Shown piece after piece: positions 1,878 through 54,190 of a DNA stretch of 64,000 nucleotides. Source of the DNA: Mytilus trossulus (Eukaryota); contig NC_086378.1 in NCBI RefSeq assembly GCF_036588685.1, positions 84,816,001 to 84,880,000 of the forward strand, read 5' to 3'. The translations under genes were made by a program, and so were the position numbers. Positions within the stretch are counted from its first letter, which is position 1; each line of letters opens with the position of its first letter. Under the pieces are notes generated by a model. That model did no database searches, was not told the DNA's origin, and was given only the letters and a program-made list of their open reading frames with translations.

Positions 1878-3396
1878 GTGAACAATTAAGTATGCGAGGC
1901 AATATGACCATTTAGTATGCGAGGCAATAGACATAATTAAGTATGCGAGGCAATATCACCATTTATAATGCAAGACAATATGAACAATTTAGTATGCGAG
2001 GCAATATGAACAATTTAGTATGCGAGGCAATATGACCATTTATAATGCAAGACAATATGAACAATTTAGTATGCGAGACAATATGACCATTTAGTATGCG
2101 AGACAATATGACCATTTAGTATGCGAGGCAATATGAACAATTTAGTATGCGAGACAATATGACCATTTAGTATGCGAGGCAATATGACCATTTAGTATGC
2201 GAGACAATATGACCATTTAGTATGCGAGACAATATGAACAATTTAGTATGCGAGACAATATGACCATTTAGTATGCGAGACAATATAACCATTTAGTATG
2301 CGAGGCAATATGACCATTTAGTATGCGAGACAATGTGACCATTTAGTATGCGAGACAATGTGAACAATTTAGTATGCGAGGCAATATGACCATTTAGTAT
2401 GCGATACAATATGACCATTTAGTATGCGGGACAATATGAACAATTTAGTATGCGAAGCAATATGACCATTTAGTATGCGAGGCAATATGAACAATTTAGT
2501 ATGCGAGGCAATATGAACAATTTAGTATGCGAGACAATATGACCATTTAGTATGCGAGACAATATGACCATTAAGTATGCGAGACAATATGACCATTTAG
2601 TATGCGAGACAATATGAACAATTTAGTATGCGAGGCAATATGACCATTTAGTATGCGAGACAATATGACTATTTAGTATGCGAGACAATATGAACAATTT
2701 AGCATGCGAGGCAATATGAACAATTTAGAATGCGAGACAATATGACCATTTAGTATGCAAGACAATATGACCATTTAGTATGCGAGACAATATGACCATT
2801 TAGTATGCGAGACAATATGAACAATTTAGTATGCGAGGCAATATGACCATTTAGTATGCGAGACAATATGACTATTTAGTATGCGAGACAATATGAACAA
2901 TTTAGCATGCGAGGCAATATGAACAATTTAGAATGCGAGACAATATGACCATTTAGTATGCAAGACAATATGACCATTTAGTATGCGAGACAATATGACC
3001 ATTTAGTATGCGAGACAATATGAACAATTTAGTATGCGAGGCAATATGACCATTTAGTATGCGAGACAATATGACCATTTAGTATGCGAGGCAATATGAA
3101 CAATTTAGTATGCGAGGCAATATCAACAATTTAGTATGCGAGACAATATGACCATTTAGTATGCGAGACAATATGAACAATTTAGTATGCGAGGCAATAT
3201 GAACAATTTAGTATGCGAGGCAATATGACCATTTATTATGCAAGACAATATGACCATTTATAATGCAAGACAATATGGACAATTTAGTATGCGAGACAAT
3301 ATGAACAATTTAGTATGCAAGGCAATATGAACAATTTAGTATGCGAGGCAATATGACCATTTAGTATGCAAGACAATATGACCATTTAGAATGCAA
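1878..3396. repeat. Minisatellite with 25/26-bp unit TTTAGTATGCGAG(A/G)CAATATG(ACCA/AACAA), ~60 copies
   Basis: Directly visible tandem array. More units at ~4186-4533 and ~5325-5662, and an isolated copy at ~1320-1355. Confidence 0.97.
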
Positions 3397-3714
3397 GTAG
3401 TTATCAAAGGTACCAGGATTATAATTAAGTACGCCAGACGCGCGTTTCTTCTACATAAGACTCATCAGTGATATTCAGGGCTGGTGATACCCTCCGGGAC
3501 GAAACATCCACTATCAGTGGCATCGACCCAGTGGTGTAAATACTTATTAAAGGTACCAGGATTATAATTTAGTACGCCAGACGCACGTTTCGTCTACATA
3601 AGACTCATCAGTGATATTCAGGGCTGGTGATACCCTCCGGTACGAAACGTCCACTATCAGTGGCATCGACCCAGTGGTGTAAATACTTATTAAAGGTACC
3701 AGGATTATAATTTA

Positions 3715-3762
3715 GTACGCCAGACGCACGTTTCGTCTACATAAGACTCATCAGTGACGCTC
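3715..3762 (-). ncRNA. Type I hammerhead ribozyme, core intact
   Basis: Minus strand: GAGCGTCA-CTGATGA-GTCT TATGT AGAC-GAAA-CGTGC-GTC|TGGCGTAC. Stem I GCGUCA/UGGCGU, stem II GUCU/AGAC, minimal stem III. Confidence 0.88.
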
Positions 3763-4061
3763 ATATTAAAATATACAAACAAGTACGAAGTTGAAGAGCA
3801 TTGAGGATCCAAAATTCCAAAAAGTTGTGCCAAATAAGGCTAAGGTTCTCTATTCCTGGGATAAGCAAATCCTTAGTTTTTTCGTAAATTCAAAGTTTTG
3901 TATTCAGGAGATTTATGAAAATGACCACATAATTGATATTCATGTCAACACCAAAGTGCTGACTACTGAGCTGGTGATACCCTCGGGGACGACATGTCCA
4001 CCAGCAGTGACATCGACCCAGTGGTGTAAATAGTTATCAAAGGTACCAGGATTATAATTTA

Positions 4062-4109
4062 GTATGCCAGACGCGCGTTTCGTCTGCATAAGACTCATCA
4101 GTGACGCTC
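4062..4109 (-). ncRNA. Type I hammerhead ribozyme, core intact
   Basis: CTGATGA-GTCT TATGC AGAC-GAAA-CGCGC-GTC|TGGCAT on the minus strand; palindromic stem III ACGCGCGT; one stem I mismatch. Confidence 0.82.
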
Positions 4110-4851
4110 AAATATTTATAAAGTACGAAGTTGAAGAGCATTGAGGATCCAAATCTCCAAAAAGTTGTGCCAAATAAGGCTTTGGCAAGACAGTATGAAC
4201 AATTTAGTATGCGAGACAATATGAACAAAGTTGTGCCAAATAGGGCTTTGGCAAGACAGTATGAACAATTTAGTATGCGAGACAATATGAACAATTTAGT
4301 ATGCGAGACAATATGACCATTTAGTATGCGAGGCAATATGACCATTTAGTATGCGAGGCAATATGACCATTTAGTATGCGAGACAATATGACCATTTAGT
4401 ATGCGAGGCAATATGACCATTTAGTATGCGAGACAATATGAACAATTTAGTATGCGAGGCAATATGAACAATTTAGTATGCGAGGCAATATGACCATTTA
4501 GTATGCAAGACAATATGACCATTTAGAATGCAAGTAGTTATCAAAGGTACCAGGATTATAATTTAGTACGCCAGACGCGCGTTTCTTCTACATAAGACTC
4601 ATTAGTGATATTCAGGGCTGGTGATACCCTCCGGGACGAAACATCCACTATCAGTGGCATCGACCCAGTGGTGTAAATACTTATTAAAGGTACCATGATT
4701 ATAATTTAGTACGCCAGACGCACGTTTCGTCTACATAAGACTCATCAGTGATATTCAGGGCTGGTGATACCCTCCGGTACGAAACGTCCACTATCAGTGG
4801 CATCGACCTAGTGGTGTAAATACTTATTAAAGGTACCAGGATTATAATTTA

Positions 4852-4899
4852 GTACGCCAGACGCACGTTTCGTCTACATAAGACTCATCAGTGACGCTC
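4852..4899 (-). ncRNA. Type I hammerhead ribozyme, core intact (duplicate of 3715-3762)
   Basis: Same sequence as the 3715 copy. Confidence 0.88.
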
Positions 4900-5199
4900 A
4901 TATTAAAATATACAAACAAGTACGAAGTTGAAGAGCATTGAGGATCCAAAATTCCAAAAAGTTGTGCCAAATAAGGCTAAGGTTCTCTATTCCTGGGATA
5001 AGCAAATCCTTAGTTTTTTTCGTAAATTCAAAGTTTTGTATTCAGGAGATTTATGAAAATGACCACATAATTGATATTCATGTCAACACCAAAGTGCTGA
5101 CTACTGAGCTGGTGATACCCTCGGGGACGACATGTCCACCAGCAGTGACATCGACCCAGTGGTGTAAATAGTTATCAAAGGTACCAGGATTATAATTTA

Positions 5200-5247
5200 G
5201 TATGCCAGACGCGCGTTTCGTCTGCATAAGACTCATCAGTGACGCTC
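5200..5247 (-). ncRNA. Type I hammerhead ribozyme, core intact (duplicate of 4062-4109)
   Basis: Same sequence as the 4062 copy. Confidence 0.82.
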
Positions 5248-6579
5248 AAATATTTATAAAGTACGAAGTTGAAGAGCATTGAGGATCCAAATCTCCAAAA
5301 AGTTGTGCCAAATAAGGCTTTGGCAAGACAGTATGAACAATTTAGTATGCGAGACAATATGAACAAAGTTGTGCCAAATAGGGCTTTGGCAAGACAGTAT
5401 GAACAATTTAGTATGCGAGACAATATGAACAATTTAGTATGCGAGACAATATGACCATTTAGTATGCGAGGCAATATGACCATTTAGTATGCGAGACAAT
5501 ATGACCATTTAGTATGCGAGGCAATATGACCATTTAGTATGCGAGACAATATGAACAATTTAGTATGCGAGGCAATATGAACAATTTAGTATGCGAGGCA
5601 ATATGACCACTTAGTATGCGAGACAATATGACCATTTAGTATGCAAGGCAACACGAACAATTTAAAAGCTGGTAACGAAATCTAACAAATACTGTCATAG
5701 ATAATTTCAATTTGAGATACATTTATATAAACGAGACAAATATAAAGTGAAACACATGGTAAGTTACTAGATGAGGTATTAACAAACAATAAAGGTTTAA
5801 TACCCTTCAAAAATTGGGTGGGATATAATATTAACAAAGTGTTCCTGTCCTGTCTGTCGGATTGTCCATAGATCTTGAAAGTGAGACTGATGCTTGAGGC
5901 AGAATAATTTTTGTAGCAACTGAATAGGACAGATTATTGTTTTGTCAAAAAGAGTGCAGATTATTTTTTGTCAAAATAGAGGCCAGTTTTTCTTTTCTTA
6001 AAAAAAAATTCCCCTCTTTTCCCCTTATTCTCTTTTTTTTTGTTTAGTCAATTTTTCTCTATTTGTAATTAAGTAATTTCTTGTCAATTCTTTAAAGCCC
6101 ATACCAGCCTTAATAAGTGATGGGTAGATGTTTAGGAGATTATGTAATTTAGGAAAACTTTAACTCAAATAGCTGTTTCCTATAATATGTTTGTTTTTGT
6201 TTTTGTTTTTGTCACTCACTAATTGTGTTTAAATAAAGATATTTATATAAAACAAAGGTTACAGGTTAAACCTTTTTAATATTTGAGACAATCATGCAGA
6301 AATGTTTTCCACACCGTACTTATTTTTCAGTTTCGGTTCTAATATTTTCGTTGATAACTCAGTGCCTAATTTCTTTGATAACTATTGTTCAATGATATAT
6401 TTGTACTATTTGTAAACATCAATATATATATATTTATACGTCATACTTTGAACGACAATTTTTGTTTATGTCTACCTGTGCAAATTTCAAACGTGCAATT
6501 TTACCCCAGTACTGAAAACCTTCTATCCTTTACGGGTAAACTTTACATGCATAAATTAAGTCGTATACGAATAACAAAA

Positions 6580-9983: not shown

Positions 9984-12455
9984 AAAAAAGGGACAGTCAA
10001 ACTCATAAATCTAAAACAAACTGACAACGCCATGGCTAAAAATGAAAAAGACAAACAGAAAAACAATAGTACACATGACACAACATAGAAAACTAAAGAA
10101 TAAACAACACGAACCCCACCAAAAACTAGGGGTGATCTCAGGTGCTCCGGAAGGGTAAGCAGATCCTGCTCCACATGCGGCACCCGTCGTGTTATCGTTT
10201 ATTAAGCAATTAATGTAATGACTTTTACAGACATTTATCAAGCAATTAATGTAATGACTTTTACAGACAAAAACGATGTTATTTGGGGCTTTGTCTGCGG
10301 GGACAACAACATATTTATCATGGAGGTCGGATAGGTGTTTAGCAACATTTGGGTCTTTAAAGATTGACGTAGCATGGGCATTGATGGACCCATTCAGTTT
10401 CTTAATTCTGATTTGTATTAAGGACCTCACTGCCTTTATCCATTCGGATAGAGTGTCTACGTCTTCCTTCTCCTTGCCTGGCATAATCCTCGACTGAATC
10501 CATCAAAATTTTAAAGTTGTATTTCCAATGATGGATTTAGGCTCACGATATTTCGGACCTTTTGATAACACGTTTCGTAGAGAAGTGTTATTAACAATGT
10601 TAAGGTCACCGGTAATAACGTGGCCAGCAGGATTATATGTGAATTGGGAACTAGCACAAGTGCAATCAGGAGGTTTAGACTTGAAGTCGTCAATATCGAG
10701 ATCCTGCAAAACGCGTTTGTAATTGAAAATTTTAGTTGCAATAGGTTTGGTATAGGTATAAGAAATTATTGGTACAGACTGGTCTTTAAAATAAGGAGGT
10801 ATTTTCGATTGAACTATTTTAGATGAAGGATATTGCCAAGGTTGATGCCATCGAGACCTTTGTTGGCAAAGGAAATATTTAGAAAAGATCTTTTCTCTTT
10901 TACATGTTTTCCAATGCGAACTGGCTTGAAAAATCTGTGACTTGCAATATCCGAAATTATAGCTTGAAGTTTGTATTGGTTTGAATGAGGGTTTGTAACA
11001 GTGGATTCCAAACATAATTTGAACAGAGAATGAAGTTTTGAAAGGGGTAATGAATAAAGTTTCGTGCGAATGTGATGAATACCTAACGGTTTTTGTATGA
11101 ATGGCAGCAATTCATCAATAGAGACATCATGCAGAGAGGGTGATGTATAATGACGATGACCATGACTGCGTCTACGTCGAGGAGTCGAGTTGAAAATATT
11201 CATTACATTCACCGAGTTACACGAAGGACTAGATAGAATACCTATACCATCAATTTTGTCATTGCAGCCATACGGTGTTGCAGTTCCCAATCGTCTAATC
11301 CAGTAGTCTTCTTTTTGTCTACGGAGAGTCGTTGAAAGATTAGGATTGTTAGAGCAATGGTATATCTTTTCGATAATGCGAACTGTCATAGAAACGATGG
11401 AATGATCAGGTTGATTGAAATGCTGGTATAGAATGTCGTTAGCATTGAGGTTAATGTCTGATCTATGACCGCACATCCGTTTGTTTATCCTTCCTTTCGT
11501 TTCACCGACGTATACCAATCCGCAAAGGTTGCACTCTAATCCGTAGACGACATTTATCGATTTACAATTCAGATCATCGTAACTTCTGGTAAAATATGAC
11601 TTCTTGGTCAAATTGCTAGTGATTTCAGCATCTGTAATTAAAATAGCACAAGTTTTGCAGCCTTTGGTCTCACATTTTGAAATGCGACAGTGTTGTACTG
11701 TGTCATCAAAAACCAAAATGTCTTTAAGGAGAACTGAACATGGCTGTATATGTGTAATGTTGCTGTTGTCACTAGGACGATGATCTGAATGAGTCGTGTT
11801 TGGGATATTTGTCATGTCTGGTGATGAGGGGACACCTGCCGTATCAGACGACACCGTGTCCATGGTGACGTCTGTTTCGGACCTTTTTATACTGGGCGAC
11901 GTCCGAGCCAGTTTCCTGTTAGTTCTTCGTAAGTTCATGCAATTGTTGTTTTGCTACTGGGCGGATGATGTCCTCGGGGACAAATTGTCCACCAGCAGAG
12001 ACATCGACCCAGTGGTAATAAAAGAGGGACGAAAGATACCAAAGGGACAGTCAAACTCATAAATCTAAAACAAACTGACAACGCCATGGCTAAAAATGAA
12101 AAAGACAAACAGAAAAACAATAGTACACATGACACAACATAGAAAACTACAGAATAAACAACACGAACCCCACTAAAAACTAGGGGTGATCTCAGGTGCT
12201 CCGGAAGGGTAAGCAGATCCTGCTCCACATGCGGCACCCGTCGTGTTGCTTATGTGATTACAAATCCGGTTAATAGTCTAATTCGGTAGGTCAAATTCAT
12301 GAAAGGGAAGGTGATTGTATTTACGACGTAAGGAAAATATCCGATATCATTTGTGAAATGGTTATTCCATAACGGTCAACCAACTAGTGATGGCGTCCGT
12401 AAAATTTACGAAGGGATGATTTCAACTTCACCATTTAGAACTCTTGATTTAATAG
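9984..12455 (-). mobile_element. Penelope-like retroelement with N-terminal GIY-YIG (Naiad/Chlamys-type domain order), RT core deleted, flanked by direct copies of its 3' end (pseudo-LTR)
   Basis: ORF 10814..11938 has a Cys cluster (CxxxxCxxC) and VVYGLECNLCGLVYVGET...RMCGHRSDI (GIY-YIG). Frameshifted continuation KGPKYREP...VVVPADKAPNN (RT N-terminal part). 3'-end repeat at 9984-10195 and 12017-12455; the latter encodes the RT C-terminus KSSLRKFYGRHH*LVDRY. Confidence 0.88.
10814..11938 (-). pseudogene. PLE polyprotein N-terminal part, GIY-YIG endonuclease
   Basis: 374-aa ORF with GIY-YIG motifs and EDYWIRRLGT...PYGCN; ends by frameshift, with the continuation in ORFs 10503..11015 and 10011..10484. 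Confidence 0.85.
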
Positions 12456-50868: not shown

Positions 50869-51310
50869 AGCTATTTACACTATTGGGAAGATACCACTGC
50901 TGACGGATGTTTCGTCCTCGCGGGTATCACCAGCCAAGTAGTCAGCACTTCGGTGTTGACATGAAAATCAATTATATGGTTATTTTAGCAAATTTTGGTT
51001 CATATGGTTTCGAAAACTAGACATTTTCTTATCCTAGGAATAGAACATCTTAGTCGTTTTTGCACATTTTGTTTTAAATCGGTCCAGAGTAATATTTAAC
51101 TTTGTACATGTTTGGCTTTATAACTATTTTTATTTGACGTCACTGTTGAGTCTTATGTAGACAAAACGCACATCTGGCGTATTCAATTTTAATCCTGGTA
51201 CCTTTCATCCATTCACAATACTGGGTCGATCCACTGCTGGTGGACATTTCGTCTCCGAGGGTACCAAAAAGCCCAGTATTCAGCACTTCGGTGTTGACAT
51301 GAATATCAAT
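50869..51310 (+). mobile_element. Degenerate retrozyme (~1.3 monomers) with dead hammerhead (CTGTTGA / AAAA / ATC)
   Basis: CTATTTACAC...GGTATCACCAGCC..GTCAGCACTTCGGTGTTGAC...CACTGTTGAGTCTTATGTAGACAAAACGCACATCTGGCGT. Confidence 0.78.
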
Positions 51311-52885: not shown

Positions 52886-53223
52886 TTTAATAAAAGAGGG
52901 ACGAAAGATACCAGAGGGACAGTAAAAGTCATAAATCTAAAACAAACTGACAACGCCATGGCTAAAAATGAAAAAGACAAACTGAAAAACAATAATACAC
53001 ATGACACAACATAGAAAAAATAAACAACACGAACCCCACCAAAATCTAGGGGTGATCTCAGGTGCTCCAGAAGGGTAAGCAGATCCTGCTCCACATGTGG
53101 CACCCGTCGTGTTGCTTGTGTGGTTACAAATCCGGCAAATCGTCTAATTCGAGAGGTCACATTCATGAAAGGGAAGGGGATTGTAGTAACGACGTGAGGG
53201 ACATATCCGATATCATTTGTGAT

Positions 53224-54123
53224 TAGTTATCAAAAGTACCAGGATTATAATTTTATACGCCAGACGCGCGTTTCGTCTACATAAGACTCATCAGTGACGC
53301 TCAGATCAAAATAGTTAAAAAGCCAAATAAATACAAAGTTGAAGAGCATTGAGGATCCAAAACTCCAAAAAGTTGTGCCAAATACGGCTAAGGTAATCTA
53401 CTCCTGGGGTAAGAAAATCCTTAGTATTTCGAAAAATTCAAAGTTTTGTAGACAGAAAATTTATAAAAATGACCATATAATTGATATTCATGTCAACACC
53501 GAAATGCTGACTACTGGGCTGGTGATACCCTCGGGGACGAAACGTCCACCAGCAGTGGCATCGACCCAGTGGTGTAAATAGTTATCAAAAGTACCAGGAT
53601 TATAATTTTATACGCCAGACGCGCGTTTCGTCTACATAAGACTTATCAGTGACGCTCAGATCAAAATAGTTCAAAAGCCAAATAAATACAAAGTTGAAGA
53701 GCATTGAGGATCCAAAACTCCAAAAAGTTGTGCCAAATACGGCTAAGGTAATCTACTCCTGGGGTAAGAAAATCCTTAGTATTTCGAAAAATTCAATGTT
53801 TTGTAAACAGAAAATTTATAAAAATGACCATATAATTGATATTCATGTCAACACCGAAATGCGGACTACTGGGCTGGTGATACCCTCGGGGACGAAACGT
53901 CCACCAGCAGTGGCATCGACCCAGTGGTGTAAATAGTTATCAAAAGTACCAGGATTATAATTTTATACGCCAGACGCGCGTTTCGTCTACATAAGACTTA
54001 TCAGTGACGCTCAGATCAAAATAGTTAAAAAGCCAAATAAATACAAAGTTGAAGAGCATTGAGGATCCAAAACTCCAAAAAGTTGTGCCAAATACGGCTA
54101 AGGTAATCTACTCCTGGGGTAAG
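53224..54123 (-). mobile_element. Non-LTR retrozyme tandem array: ~2.5 x 355-bp monomers, three hammerhead motifs
   Basis: Near-identical units offset by exactly 355 bp (53257, 53612, 53967), each with a type I hammerhead on the minus strand. Confidence 0.92.
53255..53302 (-). ncRNA. Type I hammerhead ribozyme, canonical core
   Basis: GAGCGTCA-CTGATGA-GTCT TATGT AGAC-GAAA-CGCGC-GTC|TGGCGTAT; predicted cleavage between window positions 53263 and 53262. Confidence 0.9.
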
Positions 54124-54190
54124 ATACCGAAACGGTTATTCCATAACGGTCAACCAACTCGTGATGGCGTCCGTAAAACTTACGAAGGGA

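Follow-up and report, generated by a model that had tools for sequence, protein, structure and literature searches.

A covarying hairpin at the unit junction of Naiad-type Penelope-like elements, shared with retrozymes in Mytilus trossulus, as a candidate signal for reverse transcription

The closest described system to the one reported here is the Poseidon Penelope-like element (PLE) of Anolis, whose purified protein initiates reverse transcription internally, within an RNA stem-loop close to the junction of the pseudo-long terminal repeat (pLTR) and the open reading frame (ORF) (Frangieh et al. 2024, PMC11167929). In that reaction, RNA 3' of the start is required, hammerhead cleavage is unnecessary, and the ends of genomic insertions coincide with the starts (PMC11167929). 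Here, we describe a hairpin of 63 nucleotides (nt) that lies at the tail-to-head junction of a tandem PLE in the mussel Mytilus trossulus and recurs in retrozymes of the same genome. The window, which is the whole stretch of 64,000 nt that was analysed (G000:C6:84816001-84880000, in a 1.3-Gb genome with 14 large contigs), holds this hairpin ahead of a PLE ORF (11954..12016) and in a retrozyme array (first copy 53511..53573, second copy 53866..53928). The sense strand of the PLE, the retrozyme arrays, and these hairpins is the minus strand of the window; an older hairpin pair (50879-51281) has its sense on the plus strand. The main new result is that the 3' ends of DNA copies lie at the U/A-rich tract directly 5' of the hairpin.

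PLEs in which a GIY-YIG domain precedes the reverse transcriptase (RT) have the Naiad architecture of Craig et al. (PMC8557442). Naiads carry no hammerheads and are dominant in bivalve genomes (Craig et al., PMC8557442). Retrozymes of 350-390 bp have been described in Mytilus galloprovincialis, which the repeats reported here match in size, and retrozyme RNA circles have been shown in mussel (PMC7229834). PLEs were proposed by Cervera and de la Pena as the helpers of retrozymes, based on co-occurrence and shared hammerheads (PMC7229834), and Xenopus retrozymes have been related to PLE pLTRs in a 2026 preprint (bioRxiv 10.64898/2026.07.22.740005). Neither the hairpin motif nor the position of DNA ends relative to it is described in the retrozyme and Naiad literature that we found (PMC8557442, PMC7229834, bioRxiv 10.64898/2026.07.22.740005).

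The ORF beside the hairpin is that of a Naiad-type PLE, with an N-terminal GIY-YIG domain, no canonical hammerhead, and 5'-truncated and partial tandem copies. This element, family 1, has a unit of 3290 bp and forms tandem arrays with that spacing, such as three units on contig C14, and many copies keep an intact frame of 1000 aa. The family 1 protein has no Pfam match, yet the conserved YVGET...R...H block is present. In P0001, a relative of 78% identity, GIY-YIG (residues 129-169) precedes RVT_1 (786-848), both under the Pfam curated cut-offs, and PF01541 is annotated in many relatives. A search of 20 kb of PLE tandem units (Rfam, E <= 1) returned no hammerhead. The 5' ends of copies are variable, and partial tandems have a variable upstream extension, the pLTR.

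In the window, the ORF starts at 11938, 16 nt past the hairpin, which was recognised by pattern, fold, and a covariance model described below. The PLE body (9990..11938, minus strand) consists of the N-terminal GIY-YIG part of the ORF, is frameshifted, has lost the RT region, and is fused to its own 3' tail (~10190-9990). A perfect 36-nt tandem duplication (10198-10269) stands in this damaged ORF immediately before the join between the RT deletion and the 3' tail. On the other side of the hairpin, the U/A-rich tract UCUUUUAUUA (12017..12026, minus strand), at which solitary copies end and which is predicted to be unpaired, forms the last bases of the 3' tail of the preceding unit. Beyond it, a partial upstream unit (12027..12455, minus strand), comprising 3' untranslated region (UTR) and ORF end, is the pLTR; the alignment of L001 to the tandem unit begins at position 1076. 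The hairpin directly follows the 3' UTR of the unit before it and is the first feature of each unit, with a junction that reads tail...CUCUUUUAUUA and then CCACUGGG...

A sequence-only reading of the window had pointed to a structured element shared by the PLE leader and the retrozyme, with helices kept on the minus strand, and these observations were borne out. The two segments (11954-12016 and 53511-53573) are identical at 54/63 positions by BLAST. With a degenerate pattern, five copies were located in the window where chance would give 0, the other three being at 3965-4025, 5103-5163, and 53868-53928; a stricter pattern matched 11,997 sites genome-wide, and its reversed control matched 0. 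On the minus strand, the outer helix H1 is ACUGGG/CCCAGU in both elements, the middle helix H2 is GAUGUC/GACAUC in the PLE and GAUGCC/GGUAUC in the retrozyme, and the apical helix H3 is GG(U)GGACA/UGUCCCC and GG(U)GGACG/CGUCCCC, respectively. These three nested helices form the minimum-free-energy rod of both sequences, at -27.6 kcal/mol (z -3.6) for the PLE copy and -28.5 kcal/mol (z -3.4) for the retrozyme copy, with z-scores computed against dinucleotide shuffles. Five of the nine differences between the two copies fall within helices, and all five preserve pairing. The G-U pair in H2, which was said to work on the minus strand only, is real, and the extra G-U pairs of the retrozyme variants RzB, Rz40, and Rz43 are likewise specific to that strand; the antisense strand was 1-6 kcal/mol less stable in 4/4 comparisons.

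The conserved bases that stay unpaired are GUCGAUG, CUGCUGGUGG, CCCCGAG, and CAUCA, and the same fold is found in PLE family 1, in a second PLE family, and in retrozymes. In predicted folds of the whole 355-nt retrozyme monomer and of the PLE junction, the hairpin stands separate and the upstream tract is unpaired. A CUGGUG/CACCAG pseudoknot was considered and dropped, as the pairing is not maintained in family 1, family 2, or the mini-units of the window. A hammerhead-like reading of the plus strand was also dropped, as the CUGAUGA core is absent.

The motif is not confined to this locus. The family 1 form occurs in 107 genome copies and stands 16 nt 5' of the ATG in all ~107 copies that reach the head, so the window copy is no chance chimera. 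Family 2, a second Naiad family of the same genome with a 1056-aa ORF, has a homologous hairpin 12 nt 5' of the ATG (53 copies). Its H1 is ACCAAG/CUUGGU, with three two-sided changes relative to family 1, its H2 is GAUGUC/GGCAUC, H3 is shorter, the loops are unchanged, and an internal loop carries an extra perfect 10-bp hairpin. This 23-nt inserted hairpin is misaligned by MAFFT and by our covariance model, R1; the helices of family 2 were read via hand-anchored slicing, in which four rows of the table are off by one base.

Cross-species leader sequences were taken from marine metagenome contigs that encode PLE relatives, and these contigs were searched with model R1, which was built in this analysis. 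Family 1 itself (L330) scores 87 bits. Among the relatives, L331 (53% protein identity) scores 48 bits, L338 (40%) scores 37.9 bits with UUCUUG/CAAGAA as its H1, L339 (65%) is a decayed copy whose apical stem is deleted, and L333 (44%) scores 22.9 bits with weak helices. The distance from hairpin to ATG is 12-30 nt in four PLE lineages of 40-100% protein identity and ~140 nt in L333. The outer helix, wholly rewritten in family 2 and in L338, occurs in three different Watson-Crick versions (ACUGGG/CCCAGU, ACCAAG/CUUGGU, and UUCUUG/CAAGAA), while the loops CUGCUGGUGG and CCCCGAG are fixed.

Covariation was counted in 24 distinct sequences, which are related to one another, represent ~5 independent lineages, and are the same sequences from which the structure was derived; family 2 was left out because its inserted hairpin causes misalignment. 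In this set, 92.3% of cells are paired, compared to 87.8 +/- 0.5% in shuffles (0/500) and 32-50% with slid partners. Changes on both sides affect 9/19 pairs, compared to 3.5 +/- 1.2 in shuffles (0/500), and the covariation score is 0.230, compared to 0.155 in shuffles and 0.04-0.10 with slid partners. The fixed unpaired bases, seen against rewritten helices, appear to be a stronger argument than these pair counts. We consider it very probable that the hairpin is an RNA structure under selection.

A segment without a function of its own could also be shared if retrozymes descended from a PLE junction and young copies account for the conservation. Most of the ~12,000 copies are indeed near-identical, and similarity between PLE and retrozyme that BLAST can detect is confined to the 63 nt, with none past them. 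This explanation seems improbable, as the hairpin has persisted, its helices rewritten and its loops unchanged, in PLE families that share 40-57% protein identity, every independent deletion derivative keeps it, and it is the sole part of the PLE that the retrozyme has retained.

Some likenesses between PLE and retrozyme outside the hairpin were observed. About 19 nt 3' of the retrozyme hairpin (53470-53510, minus strand) stands UUGACAUGAA, which can be compared to UUGCAUGAA with the start codon in the PLE; it may be a vestige of the PLE ORF start, a resemblance not significant by BLAST. The UUG(A)CAUGAA block downstream of the hairpin is at most a suggestive likeness. On the upstream side, GGUA(Y) followed by a U-rich stretch recurs at a distance of ~25-35 nt 5' of the hairpin in family 1, family 2, L331, L338, L339, and the retrozyme; the alignment is uncertain, and this recurrence suggests that the shared module may include the last ~30 nt of the tail.

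Other searches and more distant relatives yielded no further members. When the distant proteins P0006, P0057, and P0115 were used as queries, the same genome gave only families 1 and 2. Scans of collections of genome contigs and viral contigs with the core-motif pattern returned only chance matches in GC-rich microbes and were uninformative. In distant Naiad relatives of 30-35% identity (L387:140-237, L389:22-119, L366, L370, L381, L382, L388, L396, and L397), the motif is absent, and strong palindromes of another kind stand near the 5' end of the match, such as two CCCTAGGG arms and an 11-bp GATCAGAG stem. These palindromes, which lie in leader or coding sequence, may be an analogous element.

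The position of the hairpin relative to the ends of DNA copies is shared by three groups of elements. For family 1, copies were picked via an internal part of the 3' UTR, blind to the downstream sequence, and the last base lies within TCTTTT(ATTA) in 27/27 non-tandem copies, at positions 3285-3290 of the unit (or +1 to 3); their 5' ends are variable. In family 2, ~57 distinct places on contig C1 were examined, and ~56 of these stop 4-6 nt short of the hairpin position, with ...ACTTTT(T)(A)(C) as the final bases; the lone exception continues into the hairpin of a full-length unit. Retrozymes follow the same rule: of the 3' ends of arrays or solo copies, 20/20 lie in the last 8 nt (TATTTACA) ahead of the hairpin, and 5' ends are scattered. 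Both arrays of the window conform. In all three groups, the ends thus lie 0-10 nt 5' of the hairpin. The hammerhead cut, at position 310 of the 355-nt unit and 45 nt upstream, is unused as a DNA end. Because DNA copies end just before it, the hairpin most likely marks the start of reverse transcription.

Tandem copies add a second line of evidence. A junction scan in which a gap of 0-14 nt between tail and hairpin was allowed gave 101 matches, and the 100 of these that were listed all have the same junction length; solitary ends are ragged over 4 nt. Arrays also have uniform junctions. The constant length, set against ragged solitary ends, argues that the template RNA spans the junction and that synthesis starts inside it. 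It speaks against a model of unit-length PLE RNAs that begin with the hairpin, which would serve stability, translation control, or template jumps, and that finish with the tail as a true 3' end. In that model, an enzyme at the 5' end of one RNA would switch to the 3' end of another and so create the tandem junctions. Such a model would suit a hairpin 12-30 nt before the start codon, an array of 78-nt units (x11) that resembles repeated jumping around the hairpin, and the partial tandems of PLEs, which are classically attributed to unusual template use (PMC8557442). It does not readily account for hairpins that follow a tail instead of starting a copy (101 of the 107 in family 1, ~94%), or for the retention of the hairpin by elements without an ORF. 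Moreover, retrozyme RNA has no end here, its sole known cut being 45 nt away, yet DNA copies end here. We regard this model as rather unlikely, although it is the strongest of the alternatives.

The same observations bear on a signal at the DNA level, either an internal promoter or a preferred target of the GIY-YIG endonuclease that would home new copies to resident hairpins. Promoters do lie in the pLTRs of PLEs (PMC8557442), and the Drosophila Penelope endonuclease reportedly needs the 'tail' of its own element, in work cited in PMC11167929. However, the junction does not vary in length, truncated tails adjoin unrelated genomic DNA rather than hairpins, and both the compensatory changes and the G-U pairs confined to one strand point to an element that acts as RNA. 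There is little probability left for this explanation.

Short derivatives retain the hairpin as well. An array of 78-nt units of family 1 (6 nt of tail, hairpin, and 10 nt of leader; x11) stands directly ahead of a normal leader and ORF at its sole genome locus (L410, G000:C5:60421560-60422480) and looks as if the segment with the hairpin had been recopied again and again. Family 1 also includes a 228-nt element with an internal deletion (x2.6), found at a single locus (L017:1027-1900, G000:C11 ~50396300-50397100), which joins the hairpin plus 27 nt (a head of 90 nt) to 138 nt of tail. Family 2 has a 131-nt unit (hairpin, ~24 nt of leader, and ~26 nt of tail; x7; L411, G000:C12:27544120-27545330) and a 140-nt unit (hairpin, ~31 nt of leader, and ~29 nt of tail; x2; L412, G000:C10:46617560-46618060), which lie on different chromosomes, share diagnostic variants, and have canonical 3' ends. 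The hairpin is kept in all four derivatives, flanked by 10-31 nt of leader and 6-138 nt of tail, and each lacks a ribozyme. This evidence is of modest weight because there is one locus for each, or two for the family 2 pair.

The retrozymes of the window show the features of their class, namely short tandem units of 355 nt, each with a type I hammerhead. The array at 53224..54124 (minus strand) has 2.5 units, and its 3' end (~53232) falls in the tract just short of where a next hairpin would begin. The type I hammerhead at 53612..53655 (minus strand), with its cut 45 nt 5' of the hairpin, has a G8-to-A change in this unit and therefore scores below the gathering score (25.9 bits); intact or equivalent copies lie one period off (~53257-53300 and 53967-54010). 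This array interrupts a 5'-truncated copy of PLE family 1 (52897-53223 and 54125-54190). It splits the last codons of the ORF (...GITVS before the array and QMISDM... after it), and the PLE tail then resumes (52897..53223, minus strand) to its normal end at 52897, at CTCTTTTATTA and with no hairpin. Two older, diverged retrozyme hairpins lie at 50879-50944 and 51216-51281 on the plus strand.

RNA reads from four raw runs with the same species label, three of which behave as stranded, were mapped onto L015:60-2400. Retrozyme RNA has a depth of 1000-2500, with a 3-8 fold excess of the hammerhead strand over the other in the three stranded runs. Back-joints of 350-352 nt are abundant, and short reads of this kind cannot separate circles from tandem transcripts. 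At this depth, no pile-up of read starts or ends was seen at the hairpin edge or at the hammerhead site in the four runs. The depth of the PLE tail (250-700, both strands) falls to 1-10 at the boundary with the hairpin, with diverse loose ends; such a pattern would be expected from host transcripts that contain thousands of dead tail copies. The reads independently show the same tail-hairpin boundary.

HDV-like ribozymes define the RNA ends of R2 elements, and the hairpin could play the same part as a ribozyme of a new kind, cleaving itself at the 5' edge and so setting the ends of the unit RNA. It stands exactly at the unit boundary, its internal loops hold conserved unpaired nucleotides, and this PLE clade has no hammerhead (PMC8557442; 20 kb of units). 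Against this, read starts and ends do not pile up at the hairpin edge at a depth of 1000-2500, and DNA ends are ragged over 4-8 nt instead of falling at one bond. No covariance model of a self-cleaving ribozyme family in Rfam 15 (hammerhead, HDV-like, twister, hatchet, pistol, and others) matches either copy; the best sense-strand match across the hairpin (E = 2.1, 14.7 bits) is far below gathering. The hairpin folds as a simple rod, for which a pseudoknot is not supported, and cleavage here would cut through the 355-nt RNA of the retrozyme, whose full-length circles are known (PMC7229834). A ribozyme at this place is thus very unlikely. An apparent match to avian HBV epsilon in the adjoining tail (12037-12080, E = 1.3) was gone in full context and was an artefact of sequence cutting.

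As a whole, these results are consistent with a cis-acting RNA element that links the retrozymes to a helper PLE, as the sequence-only reading had suggested with RT recognition, priming, or translation as possible roles. Mapping of the ends favours recognition by the RT and positioning of initiation, and translation alone would be insufficient because retrozymes without an ORF retain the hairpin. Compensatory conservation of the structure, the placement of DNA ends, the constant junction length, and retention in all derivatives are direct observations; binding of the protein and control of initiation we infer through analogy with the Anolis Poseidon PLE (PMC11167929). In the proposed mechanism, the hairpin at the tail-to-head junction of tandem Naiad PLEs would bind the RT of the element. 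The bound hairpin would set the start of the cDNA inside a multi-unit RNA, which for retrozymes would be circular or multimeric, and copying would begin in the unpaired, U/A-rich bases immediately preceding the stem-loop. The same junction module is present in retrozymes and in other short derivatives, which would thereby borrow the PLE enzyme. On balance, the hairpin is probably an RT recognition and positioning element for internal initiation in Naiad PLEs, common to retrozymes.

Several points weigh against this conclusion. The number of independent lineages is only about five, the helices of L331 and L333 are imperfect, and R1 has no match in Naiad families at 29-36% identity or in L335/L336 (40%). 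The antisense strand folds nearly as well (margin 1-6 kcal/mol), and the depth of the PLE ORF (1-10) is too low to map transcript ends. A new solitary full-length copy would have no downstream hairpin, so that only tandem copies could be sources. Finally, the analogy is inexact, as the Anolis start lies within a stem-loop inside the ORF and the mussel ends lie beside a stem-loop upstream of it.

In the comparison with Anolis Poseidon, no sequence similarity is claimed. In both, a stem-loop stands at the pLTR-ORF junction of a tandem PLE, and genomic 3' ends match the initiation zone, here the stem-loop region of that junction. Both would use a multi-copy RNA as template, with a start that is neither at a hammerhead cut nor homologous to the target; that the mussel template RNA continues 3' of the start is suggested indirectly by the constant junction length and the uniform arrays. 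In contrast to Poseidon, the mussel element belongs to the Naiad clade, with an N-terminal GIY-YIG domain and no hammerhead. Its hairpin is upstream of the ATG and not 111-118 nt into the ORF, its ends lie beside the stem-loop and not within it, only one putative initiation zone was seen instead of two, and the hairpin is shared with a huge non-autonomous family. The Naiad hairpin is best read as the counterpart of the Anolis PLE stem-loop (PMC11167929), borrowed by retrozymes.

The mussel retrozymes resemble other metazoan non-LTR retrozymes in their 355-nt tandem units, type I hammerhead, abundant sense RNA, and back-joined reads, and they resemble those of Xenopus in being homologous to a terminal non-coding part of a PLE. 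They differ from earlier proposals in that the indicated helper is a Naiad PLE without a hammerhead, and the shared part is a 63-nt hairpin with its adjoining tract instead of a ribozyme. In partnerships of SINEs and LINEs, the non-autonomous element carries an RNA feature that is recognised by the autonomous RT, via a shared 3' tail. The retrozyme would likewise bear an RNA feature recognised by the RT of an autonomous element. Unlike the SINE-LINE tail, the feature shared here would follow, in the 3' direction, the point of initiation in a template that is multimeric or circular, and it is therefore found at the 5' head of the DNA units.

TERT is the sister of the PLE RT, and the boundary helix of telomerase RNA lies 5' of the template and stops synthesis. 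The mussel hairpin may be likened to this helix, as it adjoins the copied stretch and initiation would be inside the RNA, and the 78-nt array is reminiscent of a bounded segment copied over and over; these are resemblances only, and the mussel hairpin, unlike the boundary helix, lies 3' of the start. It is conceivable, though we would not expect it, that the hairpin is a telomerase-like anchor, from which a bound RT would start at the adjoining tract in circular or multimeric RNA and recopy a bounded segment, as in the 78-nt and 131-nt arrays. If this is true, the hairpin and not the hammerhead would be the mobility determinant of animal retrozymes, and the ribozyme would be a passenger that makes circles.

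The window also contains a retrozyme variant, RzB, with two G-U pairs in H2 (hairpin 5101..5163, duplicate 3963-4025, minus strand). Its hammerheads lie at 5202-5245 and 4064-4107 (minus strand), and Hammerhead_1 scores 35 bits at 4064 and 5202. Next to it are mini-units of 143 nt (3401..3757, second block 4538-4894, minus strand), each with a hammerhead, a spacer, and a hairpin. They had been thought to keep the shared element, and this is true of H2, H3, and the loops; the closing helix is damaged, as half of the 3' strand of H1 is lost. The mini-units, with 4 copies genome-wide, all in this window, are a local oddity. A 25-nt satellite (1885-3394, 4254-4531, and 5392-5651) flanks the composite of one RzB unit and mini-units, and the whole 1137-bp block is repeated twice.

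The findings bear on two questions, namely which enzyme mobilises retrozymes and which RNA signal is read by PLE enzymes. The helper was previously guessed from co-occurrence and shared hammerheads; here, the link consists of a covarying hairpin and the identical placement of DNA ends, and a candidate helper can be named, family 1, with its many intact 1000-aa ORFs. The role of the ribozyme is thereby separated from the mobility signal. The module of ~95 nt and the natural mini-elements of 78-140 nt are usable for in vitro assays of target-primed reverse transcription (TPRT) or reporter assays. Internal initiation, shown so far for one vertebrate Poseidon element, would by this analogy extend to the Naiad clade that dominates bivalve genomes.

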